64,000 bases of DNA, taken from sequence record MW735835.1, one strand, 5' to 3'. Every line of letters starts with the position of its first letter. Position 1 is the stretch's first letter. Made by a program: the position numbers and the translations under genes. The notes beneath the pieces were generated by a model that ran no database searches, had not been told where the DNA came from, and worked only from the letters and a program-made list of their open reading frames with translations. Positions 3,501 to 64,000 of this stretch are shown here, piece after piece.

Positions 3501-4181
3501 ATGAGCAGACCTGTCATTGATCTCATCGGGCAGCGTTTCAACATGTGGACGGTTAAAGATCTCCATAAGAACCGCTCTAAAGATGGGGGTTCTCGATGGG
3601 TCTGTGAGTGTGATTGTGGGGCGACCGGGGTGGTCTCTCGGCGCAACCTGGTTACAGGAAAATCCAAGTGTTGCGGCTGTTATGTCAGTGCGGAAGGGCT
3701 AGCCAATATCAGTCAGGCTAATTTCGTGCACGGCATGCGGACATCTCCAGAATACACCGCTTGGGCGGCGATGGTGCAACAATGCACTAATCCAAAGCAC
3801 ATCGACTTTTGGAGATACGGCGGGTCTGGAATCGGGATCGTCCCAGAATGGGAGGCGGACTTCGAGAACTTTCTTACCGACATGGGCCTACGACCCTCAC
3901 CGTTGCATCGGCTCGAACGTATCGACGATACGCAGGGGTTCTCCAAGGATAACTGTCAATGGTCCATGACAGCCCACAAGAAAAGAAAGATCGATTATAC
4001 TGGAACCCACACAATCCATGGCGAAGACCTCACCCTCCTTGAGATCGCTGAAAAATACAAGGTGCATTATTTTCGATTGCGGTACCGAGTCGCTAAGAAG
4101 GGACAGGCTGCTATCGATGCACTCAATGAATTACTGGAGCTAAAGAAAACATATGTCGCAGAAACTCTACATCGAGAATAA
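3501..4181 (+). CDS. Free-standing HNH homing-type endonuclease
   Basis: DLIGQRF..W.V, WVCECDCG, KSKCCGC, HGM..SPEY.AW.AM..C, YGG.GI, HRLERIDDTQGFSKDNCQW: typical phage HNH family; more AT-rich than its neighbours. Confidence 0.85.
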   Translation: MSRPVIDLIGQRFNMWTVKDLHKNRSKDGGSRWVCECDCGATGVVSRRNLVTGKSKCCGCYVSAEGLANISQANFVHGMRTSPEYTAWAAMVQQCTNPKHIDFWRYGGSGIGIVPEWEADFENFLTDMGLRPSPLHRLERIDDTQGFSKDNCQWSMTAHKKRKIDYTGTHTIHGEDLTLLEIAEKYKVHYFRLRYRVAKKGQAAIDALNELLELKKTYVAETLHRE

Positions 4182-4758
4182 CCAGGAAGTCCGTGATCTG
4201 ATCACCAAGTACGGCTTTGCGCAGAATGCACACGGTCGTTACTTCCTGGATGAACCGTTCCTGGATCATGCAGTCGTGGATGAAGAGTGCCCCGAGGGTT
4301 TCCGTCCGGTGGCATTGCATATCGTACCGTACACCATCGTTGAGGGTGAGATCATCTACTACGCTTTCAACAGCATGGGCTTGCCGACTATCTACGTCAG
4401 CTTCAGCATCACCCCGGACGACTTCGTCAACCACAAGGCCGGGGATGAACTGATGTCGCCTTGCCAGTCGATTGTGGGTAAGGTCATCCAAACCTTCGAT
4501 GCGCCACACATCGACCTGAAGGTGGACATCGACAAGTTCAAGTTCCCGGCAGTGGTCGATGGTGAGTTCGTGTGGTCGATGGAAGTCCAATCTGCTGACC
4601 ATCACACTGTGGATGAGCTGGTCGCTCAGTTGGGTTCCATCCTGGGGCGCGTCACCAAAGAGCAAATCATCAATGGTGACGTGGAAGTCAACAAATTGTC
4701 CAAGGACGTGGTCGCTTACAAGGCGCCTGACGTCGCTCCGGACATCACGGTGGGCTGA
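4153..4758 (+). CDS. Hypothetical protein
   Basis: 201-aa ORF overlapping the HNH 3' end by 29 nt. Confidence 0.8.
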   Translation: MSQKLYIENNQEVRDLITKYGFAQNAHGRYFLDEPFLDHAVVDEECPEGFRPVALHIVPYTIVEGEIIYYAFNSMGLPTIYVSFSITPDDFVNHKAGDELMSPCQSIVGKVIQTFDAPHIDLKVDIDKFKFPAVVDGEFVWSMEVQSADHHTVDELVAQLGSILGRVTKEQIINGDVEVNKLSKDVVAYKAPDVAPDITVG

Positions 4759-4759
4759 C

Positions 4760-4987
4760 ATGATCTTCCTCAAGGTTACCGTCATCGCACTGATCGCGAT
4801 GCTTGTCCTGGCCTGGTTGGTTTATCGAGTCAGGCCGCGTTACACCAACTGGATCGACCACGACTGTGAGCGAGCCATGAGTTTCCTGATGTACCTGCGC
4901 ACGACTTGGAAGGAACGCCTGTTCGCCTTGGTCTGCCTGTGGATCATCGTCTACTACAGCCTCATCAATAACCCCTGGAGTTCGTAA
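4760..4987 (+). CDS. Small two-TM membrane protein
   Basis: Two hydrophobic segments (VTVIALIAMLVLAWLVY; LFALVCLWIIVYYSLI). Confidence 0.7.
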   Translation: MIFLKVTVIALIAMLVLAWLVYRVRPRYTNWIDHDCERAMSFLMYLRTTWKERLFALVCLWIIVYYSLINNPWSS

Positions 4988-45513: not shown

Positions 45514-46743
45514 ATGCCTGCACAAGTCAACATCAACAACTACGACAACCACCTCGTGATCACCGCCACCGACCAGAGCAATCTGGTGGATCATGTCCCG
45601 GCGATGGTCTACAAGGCAGTGTTGCGTCCGTACGGCATCGTGCTGATCAAGGACCGTCCGACCTTCACCCTTCCGCAACTGCGCTTCGGTCGCCATAAGC
45701 GTTTCTTCACCCAGATCAGTAACAGCTATGACCGCGATGGCCGTGGCACTGGCGTGCTGTTGGCTGGTGAAAAGGGCACCGGTAAGTCGCTGATGGCGGA
45801 AGAACTGGGCGCCTGGATGATCAAGCAGGACCTGCCGGTGATCATGGTCAGCGAACCCATGTCGGCTGAAGACCTGTCGGTCGTCATTAAGGCTGTCGGG
45901 CCGTGCATGGTGCTCTTCGACGAGTTCGGTAAGGTGTATCACGATGTCCACGAGCGTGAACGCCTGCTGACCCTGTTCTCGGACACCTCGTTCGTCGGTG
46001 TGATGTTCGTCATCACGGGCAACGCTGCCAGTGAGTTCTCCGAGTTCCTGGTTCACCGCCCTCAGCGGTTCCTCTACTGCATCAACTACCACAGTGGTGT
46101 GGACGAGGAGACCATGGAAGACATCCTTACCACCATGCAGGTCAAGCCGGAGATGCATGAGCTGTTCCGCGAGTACCGGGTCGATAGCCGTACCCTGAAC
46201 ATCGACTCGCTCATGTGCGTCGTGCGTCAGTCGGCGGACTGCAAGACCCCGGAGGAGCTTGTAGAGCGTTGCGAGATCCTCAACGTACCGGAACTTCCTA
46301 AGAAGCGCTGGTACATCAAGGATGTCGTTCAGCTCAGCACGGACACCGAGGAAGTCAAGCCGTTTGGCTGGGACTTCAACGCGAACCGTGTAGGCTTCAT
46401 CGGCCTGATCGAAGGACGTGTGATGGAAGCCCGCCATATTCGCGATCCAGAGGGCCGTCGTACGTCTGTCGAGTACCAAGTCTCTGCTGACAACAGCGAC
46501 GTCAAGATCGTCGTAGAAGGCATGCGCACTTTCGAGGTAACCCTCACTTACGGTTACATGCGCCCATGCTTTGATGCTGTGAAGCATGGTGAGCCGCACC
46601 CTGAGGCGGTTCTTACCAGAGAAAACAACCTCATGGTCCCTTCACGGGCAGGTGGTTTTGGTACGTTCCATTCCGAGGCCACCGTGGATAGCGGCTCGCC
46701 GCGTGAACCGTGGCGAGCCGTTCAACCGGCAGGCCGTCATTAA
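45514..46743 (+). CDS. AAA+ ATPase
   Basis: Walker A GEKGTGKS, Walker B VLFDEFGK, sensor ITGN, RPQRF arginine finger. Confidence 0.9.
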   Translation: MPAQVNINNYDNHLVITATDQSNLVDHVPAMVYKAVLRPYGIVLIKDRPTFTLPQLRFGRHKRFFTQISNSYDRDGRGTGVLLAGEKGTGKSLMAEELGAWMIKQDLPVIMVSEPMSAEDLSVVIKAVGPCMVLFDEFGKVYHDVHERERLLTLFSDTSFVGVMFVITGNAASEFSEFLVHRPQRFLYCINYHSGVDEETMEDILTTMQVKPEMHELFREYRVDSRTLNIDSLMCVVRQSADCKTPEELVERCEILNVPELPKKRWYIKDVVQLSTDTEEVKPFGWDFNANRVGFIGLIEGRVMEARHIRDPEGRRTSVEYQVSADNSDVKIVVEGMRTFEVTLTYGYMRPCFDAVKHGEPHPEAVLTRENNLMVPSRAGGFGTFHSEATVDSGSPREPWRAVQPAGRH

Positions 46744-46782
46744 TCCCTGTTCCACCCAACCCAAGGACTAAGGAGTCCAGCA

Positions 46783-47100
46783 ATGCAAGTGAAAAACCTG
46801 AGCAACATCGCTGAAGCCCTGAAAGCCGTCTCCAAAGAAGGCAAGGTCACGTTGGTCATCGACACCCTGAAGAAGCGCGACAGCGCAGCTGTGGGCAAGG
46901 TCGGTGACGTGTACTTCCAGCTGTCCTTCGACTCGTTGGCTGACGGTATCAAAGCTGGTCGTTCCGTGGAACTGAACGTGGAAACCGGCGAGGCTGTACT
47001 GCTCGACGTTCCTGTCCAGCCAGTGACCAAGGCCGTAGAGCCTACTTCTCGTCCTGGCCGCTCCTGCTCCTCCCGCATCAGCAACAAGGACATGATGTAA
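46783..47100 (+). CDS. Hypothetical protein
   Basis: AAGGAG RBS. Confidence 0.8.
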   Translation: MQVKNLSNIAEALKAVSKEGKVTLVIDTLKKRDSAAVGKVGDVYFQLSFDSLADGIKAGRSVELNVETGEAVLLDVPVQPVTKAVEPTSRPGRSCSSRISNKDMM

Positions 47101-47158: not shown

Positions 47159-47689
47159 ATGACCACGATCGTTTATCATCAAGGCGCCATCTACGCGGAT
47201 CAGGTCCACGTACGTGCTGGCACACCCTGCACCAGCCATCTGGCTGTTAAAATCTTCACCTCTGCCGATAAGCAGTTCGCCTACGGCGTGAGCGGTCGAG
47301 CCATTGCCCCGAAGGAGCGCGAATCTCTCGAACAGATTCTTCGCAAGGGCCTAGAGAAGCTTCTTGTAGCGAACATGGGCGATTCTATCATGACTCCCAT
47401 GATCTTCTCTGAAGAGGAAATAGAACGTCTCAGCGATTTCGGTGGTTGGGTCATCATGACCAAGACCAGGGCATTCATTTGGCTGTCGCGGATGATCCGC
47501 GAGGCCACAGGAGCAACCATGGGCGCCGGTACCGGTTGCTGGCTGGTGTGCGGAATGATTTACGGCGGCATGAAGCCGGAGAAAGCCATTCTTAACACAG
47601 GTGACTTGGATTGCTGCACTGGTGGCGGTGTGAACAAGATCAGTGCTAAATCCCTGAAACCCTTCGTCATCAAAGGAGAGTCCAAATGA
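47159..47689 (+). CDS. HslV/proteasome-beta-like Ntn (threonine) hydrolase
   Basis: M-T-T-I-V N-terminal nucleophile, A-D13, K30, GVSG, GAGTG, DCCTGGG. Confidence 0.7.
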   Translation: MTTIVYHQGAIYADQVHVRAGTPCTSHLAVKIFTSADKQFAYGVSGRAIAPKERESLEQILRKGLEKLLVANMGDSIMTPMIFSEEEIERLSDFGGWVIMTKTRAFIWLSRMIREATGATMGAGTGCWLVCGMIYGGMKPEKAILNTGDLDCCTGGGVNKISAKSLKPFVIKGESK

Positions 47690-48267
47690 CCCTCGCAGTC
47701 TGGCTCGACGACGAAGTCGGCCTTCAAGCCCAGGCCAACCCGATGGAAGGTGTGTACTTCCGCCTACCGGAAGACAACTTCGATCGTTGCTTCTCCAAGT
47801 ATGGTTTCGTCTACTCCCTCAAGGAGTTCGAGATCAACTACCCGGCCGTGGTGGAAAATCGCCTCCCGCCAATCCCACGCCACATCAACAATGCGTCCAG
47901 TCAGCTGGTCTACATGCTGATCGATCATTATGGAGAAGTCTGGCAGATCGACTATTGGTCTGATCGCGAAGGCCGCGTCAATGCTCCTCAAATGTCCATC
48001 TTCTCCATGCCGGCCGGAAAGGTGAAGACCCTGGTAGCGTGCACGGATGAAGGCGATTTGGAGTTGCTCACTGGTTTCGTCATGGCCAACCGAAACAAAG
48101 ACGAAATCAACCAGTTCATCTTCGATAAGAAGCTCGGTCACGGCAAACGCCTTACGTGGCTGAGCAAAAAGGACATCGTCGAACGTCTCAATAAGGAGTT
48201 CCCGCTTGAGAAAGATCCCGGTGAAAGTAATCCCTTCGCCCAAGCCATCGCCACCCCCTCGCCCTAA
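47686..48267 (+). CDS. Hypothetical protein coupled to the Ntn hydrolase
   Basis: ATGA overlap, AAAGGAG RBS. Confidence 0.8.
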   Translation: MTLAVWLDDEVGLQAQANPMEGVYFRLPEDNFDRCFSKYGFVYSLKEFEINYPAVVENRLPPIPRHINNASSQLVYMLIDHYGEVWQIDYWSDREGRVNAPQMSIFSMPAGKVKTLVACTDEGDLELLTGFVMANRNKDEINQFIFDKKLGHGKRLTWLSKKDIVERLNKEFPLEKDPGESNPFAQAIATPSP

Positions 48268-48405
48268 CGCGGTGGTAACCTTCTCTCCAGAAGGCAAGAT
48301 CGTGCTCGGACCTGGGCCTATTGGTGGCCCGGGTAAATAAATACGATCCGACCAAAGATCTATGTAGTAGCACTGTGACATCATCCCAAGATCACAAGGA
48401 ACCCA

Positions 48406-48639
48406 ATGCTGCTGAGCCCGGTCATTGGTCTCCTGTGCCGCCCTAACGTCCTATCCTTCGCCTGGAAGGCGCTGATCAAGGCCGTGGCTTTCGAGCCGCC
48501 GCCTACCGAACCCAGCTGGACGCGGCCGCACCCTAAGGAGACCGCCTCTTCGCGGTCCGAGCATTCTGGTCCCTGCCTCACGGATAAGGCCCGTGGCATG
48601 GTGGCGACCGAACGCTTAGACCTAATGTACATCTGCTGA
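48406..48639 (+). CDS. Putative small protein (77 aa)
   Basis: AAGGA RBS; plausible codons in the 5' half only. Confidence 0.45.
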   Translation: MLLSPVIGLLCRPNVLSFAWKALIKAVAFEPPPTEPSWTRPHPKETASSRSEHSGPCLTDKARGMVATERLDLMYIC

Positions 48640-48679
48640 AGCGAACGCTTAAAACTATCGCCTCTAAGGAGAGCTTGCG

Positions 48680-49006
48680 ATCAAAACCCTCAGCGTTGCC
48701 ACTATGGCGATGCTAACCCTGCTCGTCGCCACCGTCGCTAACGCGGCACCCGTAGTCGGGAGCCCAGGCAAACGGAAGGACGCGGTCGAGATGCCGGATA
48801 GGACCCTCACCCAGGACTCGACACCTGGTCTATCGAGGGCAGTCCCTACTGTGGACTGCTTTGGGTACGAGGCTCCTCTGACAGCGGCTCACGACTGGCG
48901 TGATTCGACACTGGAGCGGGGTAGCTACGTTGTAGTGCCCGAGAGGACTGTCAAGCGCGTGCTTCCGGTGCACGGCAGCCTGACAGTATCGGGAAATACA
49001 ATTTAA
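48680..49006 (+). CDS. Putative secreted peptide with possible ATC start (alternative ATG at 48704)
   Basis: AAGGAG 8 nt before ATC; (I)KTLSVATMAMLTLLVATVANA reads as a Sec signal; atypical codons. Confidence 0.35.
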   Translation: MKTLSVATMAMLTLLVATVANAAPVVGSPGKRKDAVEMPDRTLTQDSTPGLSRAVPTVDCFGYEAPLTAAHDWRDSTLERGSYVVVPERTVKRVLPVHGSLTVSGNTI

Positions 49007-49306
49007 GTACCGATACTGATTCGATTAAGTTCGAAGATGATGAGGGGGCAGTGGTCCTCCGTCCTTAGCAGTTAGGCCACCCAAGTATAACGGGACAGGG
49101 CGATTGCCCGACGACACCTGTTGAACGGCTCGAGCCTGGTGCGGGACAAACGTGGTAAAGGTTACGGGGCGTCGTTAGTTTGTAGTTCCTATGGCGGGGT
49201 TGATCTCCCAGCTGAGGTGCTGCCAAACGACGGCCCCTAGACTTCTCTTTATTTTTTGTTTTGCCGGGATACCAATCCTATGGTTACTAATCCCGAGACT
49301 TTTATC

Positions 49307-49618
49307 ATGTCCCTGACCCCTCTGGTACAAGTCACCACCTCGTTTGCCAACAGCTCCTCTCCGGGGTCGTTGGATAACCGTGAGCGGTGGCAGGCTGCGC
49401 GAATTACCGCAAGCCACATCAACACCTTCCTCGTTCTCATGACCCGTTGCCCGAAAGAAGCGTTCTCGGGTGAAGAGTTCGAGTCTGCCAAGCACTTGAT
49501 GACCACGTTCCAGGCGGCCTGTGGTATATTCATCGATGGTCTACATACTGCGACCACCGTAGAGCAATTATTGGAGATCAACCAGGAATTCTACTCCATG
49601 TGCTGCGCTAAAGGATAA
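49307..49618 (+). CDS. Hypothetical late protein
   Basis: CCTATG motif upstream, GAGA RBS. Confidence 0.7.
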   Translation: MSLTPLVQVTTSFANSSSPGSLDNRERWQAARITASHINTFLVLMTRCPKEAFSGEEFESAKHLMTTFQAACGIFIDGLHTATTVEQLLEINQEFYSMCCAKG

Positions 49619-49623
49619 ACACC

Positions 49624-50274
49624 ATGACCATTAGAACGCTGCTGTGCGCTGGCGCACAGACCAATAAAACCTACTTGCCAGGACCCCAGAACCTCGCGTT
49701 TGGCACAATGGAAGACCGTGGGTATTTCGGCGAGGTGAGTAGTGCTGACCTCGCTACCAGCGCCGAGCTGGCCACTTTGGTTGATTTGGATTCGATCGGC
49801 ACGATAATGAATCCGGCAGCCAGCTGGTTGAAATTCGCTCACAAAGGCAAGGTCCTCTATATTGCCAAACAGCCCCTGCGCCGGGGCTTGACGATCGCTC
49901 AGTATAGCGCCCGTGGTCTGATATATGGTCGTGATGTCACCATTAAAGACATTCCGTTTAAGGTCAGGTTCATGACCGGGGGTGACGCCGATCCCGCTAC
50001 CGTCGGCGGTGGTGAATGGAACGACCTCATGTACCCGGTATGTTCAGCCAGGCCAGCGGGACAACCAATATGGGCCAACTTCTCCGAAGCTACCCTCATG
50101 GTCAATAACGCTGATGTGGGCCGGGCTACTTTCTGTCAAGAATTACGATCAGGGTCTACATTCCACATCTACCGTGGTTACACGTCACTGCAAACTTTTG
50201 CAGCAGCAGTAGCTAACTCCGACATGAACAACTACGGTTGGCGTCCTGTCCTTGAGTACACCGGTTCTCTCTGA
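49624..50274 (+). CDS. phiKZ-like virion structural protein
   Basis: PGPQ.L..G....GYFGEV, WLKFAHKGKVLYIAKQPLR, GGEWNDLMY, GWRPVLE: recalled phiKZ paralog family. Confidence 0.8.
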   Translation: MTIRTLLCAGAQTNKTYLPGPQNLAFGTMEDRGYFGEVSSADLATSAELATLVDLDSIGTIMNPAASWLKFAHKGKVLYIAKQPLRRGLTIAQYSARGLIYGRDVTIKDIPFKVRFMTGGDADPATVGGGEWNDLMYPVCSARPAGQPIWANFSEATLMVNNADVGRATFCQELRSGSTFHIYRGYTSLQTFAAAVANSDMNNYGWRPVLEYTGSL

Positions 50275-50307
50275 TGCGTCATACAGGGCAGGCCTAGGCC
50301 TGCCCTG

Positions 50308-50355
50308 TATGCCGATTTGATTGAAACTTTTTTCAACGATACATGATAGCGGTGA
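50308..50355 (+). repeat. 48-bp exact repeat containing early promoter copy 3 (identical to 54033-54080)
   Basis: TATGCCGATTTGATTGAAACTTTTTTCAACGATACATGATAGCGGTGA. Confidence 0.9.
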
Positions 50356-50389
50356 ATAACCCCCGCAATAATCTAATGGAGATTGAACT

Positions 50390-51112
50390 ATGAACGCTAC
50401 TAAAACTGCTCTGATCGCTGGCGCCGGTGTCCTGGGTGTGGCTGCTGTTGCTGGTCTCGGCTGGCGCTGCCTGAAGTCCCGCAATAAAGCCAAGGCTGTC
50501 GAGCCGGTAGCTGCTGTTCCGGTGGTACCGCCGGTGACCAAGAAGCCGGAGACTGTGGAGGTGAAAGAACTCTCCACCCTGTCGCTGCGCAAGGCTGGCG
50601 ATCCTGTCCTGTCGGCAGTCGCTGACATGATGGACAACAACTGGAACCTGGGTAATCACCCGGTGACAGAAGAAGCTGTTGTTGAAGAGGTCGTGACCGA
50701 GGCTGTTGTTGCTCCCAACGACAAGGTCGAAGAAATCCAGGATGGCGAAGGTCAACCGCTCGTCTCGGTCTCCCGTGTCCGCGTCCCGGACCAATCGACT
50801 GAAGCCGAACCGGACATGACCCCAGTCTTCTGGAAGAACTTCCTGGCCAACATCAAGCGCCCTGACGTGATCGCTGTCGAGTCCAAGTCGGACTTTGCAG
50901 TGCACGATACTAAGCGTGCCAAGGGCTTCCATCGCTGCACCCTGGATGGCGTGGAGGGTGTCCTCCACGTCACCAAGTCCCACACCACTGCTCTGATTCA
51001 TCTCGGTGGTACGGAGTTCAGTGGTATCAGCACCAGCTCCTCGCGCTTCCAAGGCAAGGGCCTGCGCAACCTGAACGCCGATCAAGCCAAGAACTTCTTG
51101 GCCGGTCGGTAA
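50390..51112 (+). CDS. N-terminally membrane-anchored early protein
   Basis: GGAGA RBS; ALIAGAGVLGVAAVAGLGW TM followed by a basic stretch. Confidence 0.8.
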   Translation: MNATKTALIAGAGVLGVAAVAGLGWRCLKSRNKAKAVEPVAAVPVVPPVTKKPETVEVKELSTLSLRKAGDPVLSAVADMMDNNWNLGNHPVTEEAVVEEVVTEAVVAPNDKVEEIQDGEGQPLVSVSRVRVPDQSTEAEPDMTPVFWKNFLANIKRPDVIAVESKSDFAVHDTKRAKGFHRCTLDGVEGVLHVTKSHTTALIHLGGTEFSGISTSSSRFQGKGLRNLNADQAKNFLAGR

Positions 51113-51163
51113 GACAGCATAAGAGGAGGCCTTCGGGCCTCCTCTAGCTTTTCTTTTTTGACC

Positions 51164-51631
51164 TTACCAGTTCAGCGCAGCACGATCCGAGGTGATGGTC
51201 AACTTCTTCCGAGCCAGCCAAGCCTTCAGGTCCACTTCGGTGCACGAGTCAATCATGCTTGCCGAGATGGTCTCCTTGGTTTTGTACTCGTTGAGGATAC
51301 CGTTGTAGAGGTTGTCCACTTTGACCCACAGTGCTCGGTCCCAGTCAATCTTGTACAGGTACACCTGGAGTTTCTCCAGTTCCTGCTTGCTGGGTACCTT
51401 ACCCTCGAAGCAAAGCATGATGTCGTTGCCAGCGGATTTGAAGCGGTTCAGCTTGTAGTGTTTCTCCACCACGGAAGCGAAGCCCTGGGCAATGGCTTCT
51501 TCCAGCAGAGTGGTCGCGTACAGCCACTCATTGGACTCCGTGGTGTCCCACTCGACCTTGATCCCAGTGTAGGCGATACCTGGCTTGAGTTCGGGTTGAC
51601 GGTAGCCCGATCCGTGGTAAAGGTGCGGCAT
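51164..51631 (-). CDS. phiKZ-like conserved protein (probable virion component)
   Basis: LYHGSGY...ELKPG..YTG..V.WD.TESNEWLYAT; TATG motif upstream on the minus strand. Confidence 0.75.
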   Translation of the reverse strand: MPHLYHGSGYRQPELKPGIAYTGIKVEWDTTESNEWLYATTLLEEAIAQGFASVVEKHYKLNRFKSAGNDIMLCFEGKVPSKQELEKLQVYLYKIDWDRALWVKVDNLYNGILNEYKTKETISASMIDSCTEVDLKAWLARKKLTITSDRAALNW

Positions 51632-60805: not shown

Positions 60806-61240
60806 GTAGGACCTGTTCTTTCACAATGGACCGGCACACTGCATCCTGATGCGCTTGACTGCGTAGAACTGGATGGTCTTGAACCATCACCCTAGCGGTA
60901 CCCGCCCACTCCCCCATGGGGCGGGCCGCAAAGCGAGGAGGGCTTCGGCCCTCCCGCACTATTTCGTTGCCTCTGGTGAACTCATCGTGATAACCAGAGA
61001 GGTGTTACCGTTCTGTTACCAGTGACCTCGCTACCTCGCTGCTCTAACAGTAAACGATGGCGACGTTGAGCCTGTGCTCCGCGCCGCTGCCAAAAGGTTG
61101 TTTTCCTGATCCGGCTAACAGGAAAGCGATCTGGTGCTCGGGGTGCCACTCCTCACCCTAAGAGTATCGCTAGAGTGCAGCCTCCAGTGTTCAGTCTTCG
61201 GATCGAACACTGGGGGAAGCACTCTGGTTATGCTTTTTTT
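60806..61240 (+). ncRNA. Candidate circularly permuted tmRNA-like RNA
   Basis: No ORF of 60 aa or more on the + strand; TATG start motif; CCCGC-CCACTCC-C-CCA followed by GGGGCGG; CTCG-N5-TCGCTGCT pk1-like segment; tag-like frame 61050-61109; cUUCGg terminal hairpin plus U7. Confidence 0.55.
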
Positions 61241-61292
61241 GCCGTCTTCCAGAAATAATGGCGGGTAAGATATAGCACACTGGGAGGCGAGT

Positions 61293-61661
61293 ATGGAACT
61301 CTACACTGTAGCGCTCTCCCAATGGCGTAAAGCCAAGGAGAGACAAATTGAACTCTTCGACATCACGGTCAAGTCTGGCAAGGAGAAACTCTTTGCTCCA
61401 GATGACCAAGTCCTCTGGGCTTATAAGCGTGGCGAAGTCACTGACGAGCAGTACACTAAGCTTTACTTCCAACGGCTGAAGAAGAACATTGCAGCGCATC
61501 CTGACGTGTTTGAGTCCTTCCTGCAATTGGAAGGTCCGTTAGCTGTCGCCTGTTATTGTCGTGCGGGTAAGTTCTGCCACAGGCACTTGTTTGTGGAATT
61601 CATGGTCGAAGTAGCCGATGACAACGGCTATGAACTGAAGGTACGCGGCGAAATACTATGA
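61293..61661 (+). CDS. DUF488-like protein
   Basis: DIT.KSG...FAP...L...K.G....Y...Y...L; LAVACYCRAGKFCHRHL. Confidence 0.75.
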   Translation: MELYTVALSQWRKAKERQIELFDITVKSGKEKLFAPDDQVLWAYKRGEVTDEQYTKLYFQRLKKNIAAHPDVFESFLQLEGPLAVACYCRAGKFCHRHLFVEFMVEVADDNGYELKVRGEIL

Positions 61662-62135: not shown

Positions 62136-62699
62136 ATGGCATGTAAGACGGACAACTTCAAGTTCGATCCCGATAAGACGGCGTTGGAAAACCTCTTCGC
62201 TCTTATCTATCGAACCAACCGTGTGAAACTCAATCCAAACTTCGTGGACGTCGAGACTCCACGGGCCTTGGAAGACGGAGAGGACGATGATGGCGATAAC
62301 ACCGTCATTAAGGTTGTGGCAAAGGCGGGAGGACCCTTCAAAGGTCAAGAAGACCTCTACTACGCCCGAGCTGACATCAACACCCACTACCCCACCTTCA
62401 CCATCGACCTCAAGGATGTCATGGGCATCCACGACAAGTCCGCGCTGATTGCGTATCTGGACGGTCGGTTTAATCTGGTGGATGGTGAGTTCGACATCGA
62501 CATCAATGATCCGTTCCAGTCGTTGATGCAGTTCGGTGACGTGGACATCTTTGCCAAGGAAACCTCGCTCATCTACATCGGCCAGAAGAAGATCCATTTG
62601 TTCTGGTCTGAAGGCATTCGTCGAGTCACTGACGAAGGGCGCCTGCGCATTACTGATGAAGGTCAGATCCGCTTCGTGGAACTCGGTACTCTTGACTGA
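62136..62699 (+). CDS. phiKZ-like virion structural protein
   Basis: LFALI..TN..L...V....P...NT.I.V.A.AG..FKG..DLYY.R: recalled phiKZ structural family. Confidence 0.75.
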   Translation: MACKTDNFKFDPDKTALENLFALIYRTNRVKLNPNFVDVETPRALEDGEDDDGDNTVIKVVAKAGGPFKGQEDLYYARADINTHYPTFTIDLKDVMGIHDKSALIAYLDGRFNLVDGEFDIDINDPFQSLMQFGDVDIFAKETSLIYIGQKKIHLFWSEGIRRVTDEGRLRITDEGQIRFVELGTLD

Positions 62700-62703
62700 C
62701 AGC

Positions 62704-62738
62704 ATAGAGGGAGGGCCTAGGCCCTCCCTCTATGTCGG
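62704..62738. terminator. Bidirectional CATA-hairpin-TATG element between convergent genes
   Basis: CATAGAGGAGGGC-CTAG-GCCCTCCCTCTATG. Confidence 0.7.
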
Positions 62739-62746
62739 ATCGCCGA

Positions 62747-64000
62747 TTAGGCCGGGTTTTCCAGGCCGTCAGCAGCGGTGTCGAACGCGTCAGTCAGCGC
62801 CAGGGCCAGAGCCTCGATGTCCGAGGTGTTCTGAGCGATGGCGGTGTTCAGCGGAGCGTTCGCAGCAGCGATGGCAGCATCGCGCTCGCTTTCCACGGTA
62901 GCCAGGGTTTTACCGCCCAGCTTCGCGGAGTCGGCAGCCTGCTCGGTTTTGCCGAGTTTGCCGTCGATGACCAGAGTCAGCGCCGCGACGGCGTCGTTCT
63001 GGTTGGCCAGGGCATCGGCCAGTTCCTTCAGGGTGTCGAGGGCAGTCGGAGCGCCGTCCACCAGAGCAGCGATGGCACCGTCAACCGAAGCCTTCAGACC
63101 CAGGGCGGTGATGTACTTGACATCGTCGGTACCAGCGATGGCTTCAGCAGTGGAAGCCTTGGCAGCGATGAACGCGTCCAGGGCGGTCTGAACAGCGGTG
63201 ATGCTGTCAGCGTTGTTGCCATCGGCAGCTTGCAGAGCAGCGATCAGAGCGGTCAGGGTCTGACCACCGACGCTGTACTGGCCGAAGTCGTCGGTCTTCA
63301 GAACGACGTTGCCCAGGTCGACTTCACCGGACGCCATGGCCACCACTTCGAGCAGGGTCTTACCTTCGAGCTTCGCGGAGTCCGCGGCGGTCTCGGTCTT
63401 ACCCAGCTTGTTCGGCAGCTCAGCCGCAGCGGCAGCAGCGGCAGCAGCCGCGCCATCGGCGGTAGCCTGAGCAGCTTGTGCAGCGGCAGCAGCAGCGCCG
63501 GTAGCAGCAACGCCGCTTTCCAGGTGCTGCTTGAGGGTCTTCGGATCGGTGCTGGCGGTCACGAAGTACGTGGTGCCATCAACGGCCGAAGCAGCGGTCA
63601 GGGCAGCGTCCAGAGCAGCGAGCACGCCGCTGTCCAGAGGCTCAGCCGGAGCTTCGAAGGTGCCGTTCAGGTCGGGGTCGACTTGAACAGTCAGTTCGCC
63701 AGCGTTGCGCACTACCGAGTAGGTAGCGGTACCAGCGTTGACTTCAGCAGCGACGTAGACAACTTCGTCGCTGGCCACGGCTACCGGGTTGGCACCCAGG
63801 TCGCTGGTCGCGGTCAGGAAGTTGGAGCCTTCGCCAACTTGGGCTTCCAGCGCGGTAACGCGGTCGTCCAGCGGGTCAACGGCAGCAGCGATCTTCGCAT
63901 CGGCTGCGGTGTTGGCAGCAGCCAGCGCAGCGTCGGCTTTGGCTTGGGCGCCAGCCGGGGTTTCCTTGGTACCGATCTCGGACATCAGGGTGTTGATGAT
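62747..64000 (-). CDS. Ala-rich tail-fibre-like virion protein (5' end beyond the window)
   Basis: Two KLGKTE.AADSAKL.GKTL repeats, APTALDTLKELADAL motif; frame open to the window edge. Confidence 0.8.
   Translation of the reverse strand: MINTLMSEIGTKETPAGAQAKADAALAAANTAADAKIAAAVDPLDDRVTALEAQVGEGSNFLTATSDLGANPVAVASDEVVYVAAEVNAGTATYSVVRNAGELTVQVDPDLNGTFEAPAEPLDSGVLAALDAALTAASAVDGTTYFVTASTDPKTLKQHLESGVAATGAAAAAAQAAQATADGAAAAAAAAAAELPNKLGKTETAADSAKLEGKTLLEVVAMASGEVDLGNVVLKTDDFGQYSVGGQTLTALIAALQAADGNNADSITAVQTALDAFIAAKASTAEAIAGTDDVKYITALGLKASVDGAIAALVDGAPTALDTLKELADALANQNDAVAALTLVIDGKLGKTEQAADSAKLGGKTLATVESERDAAIAAANAPLNTAIAQNTSDIEALALALTDAFDTAADGLENPA

Follow-up and report, generated by a model that had tools for sequence, protein, structure and literature searches.

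A probable small-gene transcription unit with covarying hairpins and a putative AUC start codon in the Pseudomonas jumbo phage pPa_SNUABM_DT01

The last 64 kb of the 265.5-kb genome of the Pseudomonas jumbo phage pPa_SNUABM_DT01 (MW735835.1; DT01 for short)—'the window' in what follows—include a stretch of ~1 kb, between a gene for a 193-amino-acid (aa) protein (47686-48267) and one for a protein of ~110 aa, in which GenBank annotates a single hypothetical protein of 77 aa (48406-48639). Farther upstream lie genes for an AAA ATPase and an HslV-like peptidase, and downstream one for a virion-protein paralogue (Pfam, PHROGs); genome G+C is 55-60%, and the 17 kb surrounding the stretch agree with the record at 100% identity. 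DT01 is reported to have phiKZ-like RNA polymerases, both virion and non-virion (PMC8541153). An initial annotation of the bare sequence had noticed a promoter-like motif (TATGTAGTAGCACTGTGA) at 48361 and a T-rich end at 49243-49260, and took what lies between them for a large, ornate non-coding RNA (ncRNA). Both landmarks are there. They delimit a unit, 48361-49260, within the stretch, and its TATG head and U-rich end are kept in all relatives. The ncRNA, as we describe below, has not fared as well, for most of the unit appears to be occupied by two small genes, orfA and orfB. All of its features lie on the plus strand:

48361..48385, plus strand: TATG (48361-48364) and the 5' leader GTAGTAGCACTGTGACATC; a candidate phiKZ-type promoter and transcription start, picked out by conservation.
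48396..48639, plus strand: the Shine-Dalgarno (SD) sequence AAGGA (48396-48400) and orfA (48406-48639), 77 aa, GenBank PA10_00292; comparative evidence.
48480..48503, plus strand: hairpin H1, inside orfA, GGC-C-GTGGCT-TTCG-AGCCGC-C-GCC; covariation.
48573..48604, plus strand: hairpin H2, at the 3' end of orfA, a two-tier stem with a nearly invariant, SD-like loop AUAAGGC (48584-48590); covariation.
48665..49006, plus strand: the SD sequence TAAGGAG (48665-48671), an 8-nucleotide (nt) spacer and orfB (48680-49006), an unannotated frame of 108 codons with a putative ATC start; comparative evidence.
48941..49035, plus strand: a nucleotide-conserved block across the end and stop codon of orfB, made up of the CGAGAGGACT..AAGCGCGTGC/GCACG hairpin, the CAGTATCGG/CCGATACTG hairpin and the motif TTCGATTAAGTTCGAA; blastn and comparison.
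49007..49156, plus strand: non-coding 3' region with local hairpins at 49046-49065 and GGGC-GATT-GCCC; indels and identity.
49157..49260, plus strand: three-tier terminal hairpin (core 49166-49237, apical loop UUGAUC), then a U-tract (49243-49260); covariance model and covariation.

Seventeen further copies of the locus were gathered in three ways—by searching with a conserved neighbouring protein, by exact scans with the conserved 5' motif, and by look-ups of called proteins—all of them from uncultivated phage contigs, ~250-277 kb long where the size is known. The nearest relative, L053, is ~80% identical to DT01; a group of eight (L043, L045, L046, L049, L050, L051, L054 and L064) is ~55-60% identical; and three deep lineages (L044/L057/L060/L061, L042, and L047/L055) align only patchwise. 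The unit is syntenic in all 17 relatives, and the gene order—HslV, 193-aa gene, unit, ~100-aa gene—is kept. No other cultured phage has the region: the leader and the downstream gene are absent from all others of 50,697 phage records. The upstream 193-aa protein, used as the query, found no relatives because it is too divergent, and an exact 15-mer scan of IMG/VR with TCGATTAAGTTCGAA gave 39 matches, nearly all by chance.

When 12 of the units are compared frame by frame, 48406-49006 resolves into two frames that are open throughout, and all other frames contain 0-9 stops, mostly several. The frames stay open, with indels in multiples of three, across lineages that are just ~55% identical in nucleotides. 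Because of this, and because the SD and start contexts are conserved, orfB begins with a signal-peptide pattern, and the coding score favors the proper frames, we conclude on comparative grounds that 48406-49006, ~70% of the unit, is translated. An early non-coding reading, which arose when tblastx of DT01 against the first, distant relative found no protein match, was overturned by the frame and indel analysis of closer relatives.

The first of the frames is conventional. In orfA, AAGGA is followed after 5 nt by ATG, and the SD and start context are both conserved. The frame runs for 65-90 codons without a stop in all 12 units (other frames: 0-8 stops, mostly several), and 9 of the 13 indels in pairwise alignments are multiples of three. 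Its coding log-odds in DT01 are positive in its own frame and negative in the other two, its codon adaptation index (CAI) is 0.72 against a genome value of 0.68 +/- 0.08, and metagenome gene callers also report it. A recognisable N-terminus, M.F..VIGLL.RP, is common to four lineages, with synonymous differences; orfA is fast-evolving, with a synonymous fraction of ~0.2.

The second frame is less conventional. Placed ~40 nt after orfA, orfB is open for 96-117 codons in 12 of 12 units (other frames: 2-9 stops), 14 of its 16 indels are multiples of three, and its coding log-odds, like those of orfA, are positive in its own frame and negative in the other two. Its start codon would be ATC in 16 of 18 relatives and ATA in the remaining two, which form one lineage, and in every relative a strong SD precedes this codon by 5-8 nt. 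Over four deeply divergent lineages the SD takes the forms TAAGGAG, AAGGAGG, ACGGAGA/TGGAGCG and AAGGGGAG. An in-frame stop lies 0-29 codons upstream of the ATC, with no ATG, GTG or TTG between. Having no canonical start codon, orfB escaped annotation; metagenome callers report it only cut to an internal ATG, and a profile search of 5.8 billion proteins retrieved just five clusters, all cut at internal ATGs. In most lineages the N-terminus looks, by eye, like a signal peptide: K or R among the first five residues, a hydrophobic core of 12-15 residues, and an AxA-type site, with putative cleavage at, for example, ..LSAQA/EE and ..VANA/AP (L042 and L047, by eye again, have no positive charge). 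Toward the C-terminus there is a conserved motif, ERT(V/I)(K/Q)RV..VH.

In E. coli, initiation at AUC proceeds at ~1-2% of the AUG rate, and the only confirmed AUH-start genes there are infC and pcnB, both AUU (bioRxiv 10.1101/063800). Like them, orfB has a conserved AUH codon at a normal distance from a Shine-Dalgarno sequence, which implies deliberately weak and possibly IF3 (initiation factor 3)-sensitive initiation. It differs in that its codon is AUC (AUA in one lineage) rather than AUU, in that the start is predicted from sequence comparison, and in that orfB is an orphan phage gene, with no known feedback loop, for a small, putatively exported protein. One might suppose instead that orfB begins at an internal canonical codon (ATG 48704 in DT01) or is untranslated, its ATC and SD being coincidental, or a ribosome stand-by or decoy site. 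The rarity of near-cognate initiation in bacteria (bioRxiv 10.1101/063800) speaks for this, as do the canonical in-frame codons (ATG, GTG or TTG) that most relatives have 6-10 codons further on, a second SD-like UAAGG in the loop of H2, and the poor codon usage and lack of a predicted fold of orfB. But the downstream codons have no SD and fall inside the hydrophobic core, so that the conserved, positively charged n-region would be lost; L042 has no canonical start at all in its first 34 codons; the frame is open from exactly the ATC; and the arrangement of SD, spacer and AT(C/A) is kept in four deeply divergent lineages whose SD variants differ. We regard an internal start, or none, as improbable though not negligible, and initiation at AUC as the better account of orfB.

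At the head of the unit, TATGT is invariant in all 12 aligned units, and the 21-nt leader, GTAGTAGCACTGTGACATC, is identical in 10 of them and 100% identical in the pairs used to compare segment identities. Its core, TAGCACTGTGACA, is found again in L057 and L061, which are more distant; the leader itself has a single copy in the window, and in the whole DT01 genome, and is absent from every other phage record. Late promoters of the phiKZ non-virion RNA polymerase consist of TATG, from -3 to +1 (PMC7618050). TATG is enriched in the intergenic DNA of the window (26 observed, 9.2 expected), and C(C/T)TATG recurs just after terminators, for example at 49277-49282, after the unit. For these reasons taken together—invariance, enrichment, recurrence and analogy—the G of TATG, 48364, is the likely transcription start. 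The resemblance to phiKZ late promoters is that an invariant TATG heads the unit, in a phage that has phiKZ-like virion and non-virion RNA polymerases and is rich in intergenic TATG; the difference is that conservation here continues ~20 nt past the TATG, in a form unique to the unit, and that the start is a prediction from sequence. A scan for sigma-70 promoters and simple terminators found no relevant site at the unit.

That scan missed the 3' end because the loop and stem of the terminal hairpin exceed its limits. A covariance model of this hairpin, R1, has one match in the window (49157-49250), plus 14 relatives; in the alignment fitted to the model, pairing holds in 93.7% of cells, and both partners have changed in 13 of 26 pairs. 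With a stable G+C-rich stem that shows compensatory change and runs straight into a U-tract, the element has the makings of an intrinsic terminator, and we take it to be the terminator-like 3' end of the transcript. It resembles such terminators, too, in lying at the end of a cassette, with the next promoter-like motif 20-30 nt downstream, but its ~90 nt form three helices capped by a conserved apical loop, UUGAUC, and the window's others are simple hairpins of 6-9 bp.

From all this we think it probable, with good but not complete confidence, that the region is an autonomous phage transcription unit of ~0.9 kb, chiefly a messenger RNA (mRNA) for two small proteins, with cis-acting RNA elements. 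By analogy with phiKZ, it would be transcribed from the invariant TATG (48361-48364) by a phage polymerase. A conserved leader of ~20 nt would precede orfA, whose 77 aa would be translated from an ordinary SD and AUG, and orfB would start at the near-cognate AUC, 8 nt past its strong SD—and, because of that codon, be made at a low level. The product of orfB would be exported by way of a Sec-type signal peptide to leave a mature protein of ~85 residues, poorly conserved and probably disordered. The transcript would end at the long, covarying hairpin and its U-tract, and the leader, H1, H2 and the 3' domain may control the stability, processing or translation of the message.

Several observations weigh against this interpretation. 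The promoter is called by analogy with phiKZ, from a motif of a mere four bases, and the AUC start is a purely comparative proposal, for Pseudomonas and DT01 alike. The CAI of orfB is 0.55, under the genome value, and its 108 codons include three AGG, five ACA and two CTA; the initial annotation had remarked on rare codons such as these in the embedded frames, rightly for orfB and wrongly for orfA. AlphaFold predicts a helix at residues 4-17 of orfB and no confident fold otherwise (predicted local distance difference test, pLDDT, 55), and neither orfB nor orfA, nor the alignment of either, matches a family in Pfam or PHROGs; the products appear to be orphan proteins. Both frames have what a gene should have in the way of open length, indels of 3n and a ribosome-binding site at the proper distance, and yet neither has the synonymous excess that would mark purifying selection. 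The synonymous share of changed codons is 16-33% in divergent pairs (up to 45% in near-identical pairs, where changes are few) versus 41-76% in the adjacent gene, and substitutions are spread nearly evenly over the three codon positions. The proteins would seem to be fast-evolving, or constrained only in parts, with weak selection on their amino acids. Finally, the two frames are less variable at third positions than the neighboring gene is; part of the conservation must therefore be of nucleotides as such, and the RNA may do more than serve as a message.

The unit is also a mosaic. Between L043 and L046, orfA is 0.97 identical, orfB 0.64 and the 3' part 0.92; between L050 and L051, orfA is 0.62 identical and the 3' part 0.93. 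Modules thus reassort by recombination, and this, in company with near-neutral proteins, is typical of accessory phage genes for host interaction. Among L043, L045, L046, L049, L050, L051 and L054 there are two allelic types of orfA, at least two of orfB, and two of the terminal hairpin, which combine without regard to one another or to the flanking genes; L045 and L049 share a terminal hairpin type unlike that of their nearest relatives.

What the RNA might contribute can be judged from its hairpins. The dozen stems listed in the initial annotation are all present, among them GTGGCT-TTCG-AGCCGC at 48484-48499, CACGG/CCGTG at 48579-48595, CAGTATCGG/CCGATACTG at 48984/49010, and the nested hairpin at 49166-49237. 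Clear support from relatives is confined to these four, and GGGC-GATT-GCCC has one covarying pair. In covariation tests on 8-13 distinct sequences, themselves related by descent and recombination, H1 scores 0.294 versus 0.111 for shuffles (0/500 reach 0.294) and 0.03-0.11 for slid controls; H2 scores 0.523 versus 0.196 (0/500) and 0.05-0.14; and the terminal hairpin, in the alignment fitted to its model, scores 0.421 versus 0.200 (0/500) and 0.05-0.10. Four of the nine pairs of H1 have changed on both sides. In H2, pairing holds in 92% of cells, and both partners have changed in five of the six inner pairs, so that the inner stem reads CACGG/CCGTG, CACGC/GCGTG, CATGC/GCATG, CGATC/GGTCG or CGACC/GGTCG in one unit or another. 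The H2 loop, AUAAGGC, resembles both Shine-Dalgarno sequences of the unit, and it encodes the only conserved residues of the orfA C-terminus, K-A. Frequent G-U (U-G) pairs in H2 and in the terminal hairpin fit the plus strand only, and this points to RNA rather than DNA as the molecule that folds.

Beyond the hairpins of orfA lies a 3' domain of ~320 nt that appears to be conserved at the nucleotide level, beginning within the last 65 nt of orfB. The block at 48941..49035 is the only stretch that blastn picks up in the distant relative L002, where tblastx gives no signal, and the reading frame of its CGAGAGGACT differs between DT01 and L042. The stem formed by CAGTATCGG and CCGATACTG (48984-49018) encloses the orfB stop codon, and other lineages substitute different complementary sequences. 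The next segment, 49020-49035 (TTCGATTAAGTTCGAA), displays mainly conservation of sequence, CGATTRAGTTCG, with one covarying pair and covariation that is not significant. The initial annotation was correct that the 3' end of the unit has no open reading frame (ORF): the last ~260 nt contain no conserved one and are strongly conserved nonetheless, and 19 of their 21 indels are of 1-2 nt, not multiples of three. The 3' part is 0.89-0.93 identical in pairs whose neighboring gene is only 0.49-0.57 identical at third codon positions. The local hairpins at 49007..49156 have some compensatory changes. Between the deep lineages the middle of the 3' part varies from ~50 to ~190 nt, and its folding z-scores across relatives, -0.2 to -3.6, are unremarkable.

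In bacteria, small RNAs derived from 3' untranslated regions (CpxQ-type) and dual-function RNAs (SgrS/SgrT-type) are known. Perhaps, then, the RNA is the main product here—chiefly its 3' domain, along with the leader and the hairpins of orfA—and the ORFs are secondary, or exist mainly to be translated; the RNA might be, for example, a small RNA derived from the 3' untranslated region, or a protein-binding RNA, that shares the terminator of the mRNA. The leader and 3' part are in fact the most conserved in the locus (0.89-1.0, versus ~0.5 at synonymous sites of the neighboring gene); conservation continues into orfB regardless of frame, as the two readings of CGAGAGGACT attest; the hairpins covary around the invariant loops AUAAGGC and UUGAUC; the ORFs are near-neutral as proteins; and the terminal hairpin is far more elaborate than the window's other terminators. 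However, there is no Rfam match, the z-scores of the 3' part are ordinary, and the mid-3' part is inconstant in length. The leader has no conserved pairing partner at any position within the unit across relatives; long-range pairs proposed by RNAalifold, of the leader with the 3' end or with orfB, were rejected as spurious since they have no compensatory support. High identity in some pairs could reflect recent recombination, the modules being mosaic, and the conservation of frame means that the ORFs are selected to stay open. We judge it unlikely, all told, that the RNA is the main product. The 3' part does resemble the known small RNAs in outconserving the coding part and in sharing the mRNA terminator, and the unit resembles the dual-function RNAs in combining, on one predicted transcript, a small ORF and structured RNA; it differs from both in having no identified processing site, chaperone-binding module or target complementarity.

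That the RNA or a 3' fragment of it acts in trans seems to us rather unlikely, though such a role would account for nucleotide conservation in excess of protein conservation. A more specific version, which we consider quite unlikely, is a dual-function phage RNA that encodes two peptides and is a riboregulator through its leader, its SD-mimicking AUAAGGC hairpin, and its 3' domain (as a 3'-derived small RNA, or as a decoy for ribosomes or an RNA-binding protein), with the AUC start coupling orfB to host initiation fidelity (IF3) during infection. The unit, on our preferred interpretation as an mRNA with cis-acting elements, works as an ordinary phage mRNA for small genes would, one whose leader and 3' region are structured, and it belongs to no Rfam family.

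This brings us back to the ncRNA. The initial annotation proposed that 48380-49245 is a single ornate RNA of ~0.85 kb and of the GOLLD/ROOL class, with the ORFs accidental. At -355 kcal/mol, the 866-nt region has a z-score of -3.05 with 20 shuffles or -4.9 with 30, somewhat below the -1.9 +/- 1.1 of 24 other 866-nt windows of the DT01 genome. The minus strand folds about equally well (z -2.8). Windows of 150 nt within the region range from z +2.0 to -3.3 versus -0.87 +/- 1.37 for the genome; none is an outlier, and the 20 most structured windows in the 34 kb scanned all lie elsewhere. The claim of exceptional hairpin density thus comes down to a weak excess: with z-scores this ordinary, density is at most modestly above the genome level. 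RNAalifold finds isolated local hairpins only. Its covariation term is near zero overall, at -3.1 kcal/mol for the whole unit, and is +0.4 for the 3' part; nothing suggests a large, integrated RNA architecture. The annotation could match the RNA to no known family, and neither could we: cmscan of the whole window against Rfam 15, which includes GOLLD and ROOL, gave no matches at the gathering score, and at E <= 10 the region gave four, to unrelated families and at chance level (E > 1).

The unit has some likeness to GOLLD and ROOL, being phage-associated, several hundred nucleotides long and furnished with many stems, several of which covary, and its whole-region z-score and its size are in keeping. 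It differs from them in having no covariance-model match, in being mostly reading frame, in forming local hairpins only, and in having no adjacent tRNA genes (a tRNA/tmRNA scan of the window found none). Members of that class have a match to the family model, no conserved frame, and a multi-domain structure with widespread covariation; we find none of the three here. Two frames conserved open, indels of 3n, SD and start contexts and a signal-peptide pattern largely refute the accidental-ORF idea, which we consider very improbable indeed. Background-level folding, and homologs that conserve only the protein frames, had been named at the outset as grounds for abandoning it; local folding is indeed near background, and the homologs do conserve the frames, yet they conserve some RNA structure as well. 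A direct repeat, which the annotation had also noticed, proves to be a 10-nt sequence, CGAACGCTTA, at 48609 and 48642; it is real, but it is not conserved even in the closest relative, and ~0.4 such repeats are expected by chance. A replication origin, a pac site and a repeat array were considered for the region and rejected, there being no iterons, no conservation of the 10-nt repeat, and no switch in GC skew. Elsewhere in the window, a scan of 30-64 kb picked out 150-nt windows with z-scores of -4 to -6 at 46576-46800, 50176-50400, 51000-51225, 60826-61425 and 62626-62850. These fold better than anything in the unit; they are mostly gene ends and spacers between genes, and may be terminators or RNA elements of another sort.

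If the unit is what we think it is, then the annotation of a therapeutic-candidate Pseudomonas aeruginosa jumbo phage stands to be corrected: an apparent gap of 1 kb would contain at least two unannotated small genes, orfB and a neighbor, ORF0. The locus also offers a caution for ncRNA scans: what looks like a hairpin-dense, non-coding region can be G+C-rich coding DNA whose start codon is non-canonical. Very few bacterial AUH starts have been confirmed, and it is uncommon for a near-cognate AUC that follows a strong Shine-Dalgarno sequence to be kept across phages as deeply divergent as these; if initiation does occur there, the locus would offer a natural system in which to study how stringently start codons are chosen in the course of infection. 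Post-transcriptional control in phiKZ-like phages has, to our knowledge, been little explored, and both the covarying hairpins and the conserved 3' domain are candidates for it.

ORF0 is a conserved small gene of 44 aa upstream of the unit. It begins at TTG 48206, 7 nt after AAGGAG (48193-48198), shares its first part with the 3' end of the 193-aa gene, in a different frame, and ends at 48340, 20 nt before the TATG. Homologs in L053, L049, L051, L064 and L043 share ..KIPVKV..P.AVVTF..EGKIVLG..G(K/N). Unlike orfA and orfB, ORF0 is under purifying selection, since substitutions gather at third codon positions, as between DT01 and L053 (3/2/11). A frameshift in the upstream gene was entertained as the cause of conservation at 48268-48340, and rejected in favor of this separate, overlapping gene.

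On the other side of the unit, the downstream gene is given a start at 49280 in GenBank, but ATG 49307 is the likelier one, being the point at which relatives begin MSL(T/V).. The GenBank ATG lies just past the terminator in a conserved ATCCTAT(G/A)G (window 49277-49309) that resembles the next promoter of the TATG type. In three lineages an extra gene is found between the unit terminator and the ~100-aa gene: one of 206 aa in L042 (rc 4328-4948), one of 215 aa in L044 (rc 3838-4485), and one of 127 aa, with DUF1353, in L047 (rc 4289-4672) and L055 (3108-3491). The slot directly downstream of the terminator is an insertion hot spot for accessory genes. Farther along, the intergenic sequence at 50280-50350, upstream of a 240-aa gene, matches two different intergenic sites in L002, 6302-6364 and 9793-9849, at 70-75% over 50-70 nt, and looks to be a repeated element of a regulatory kind.

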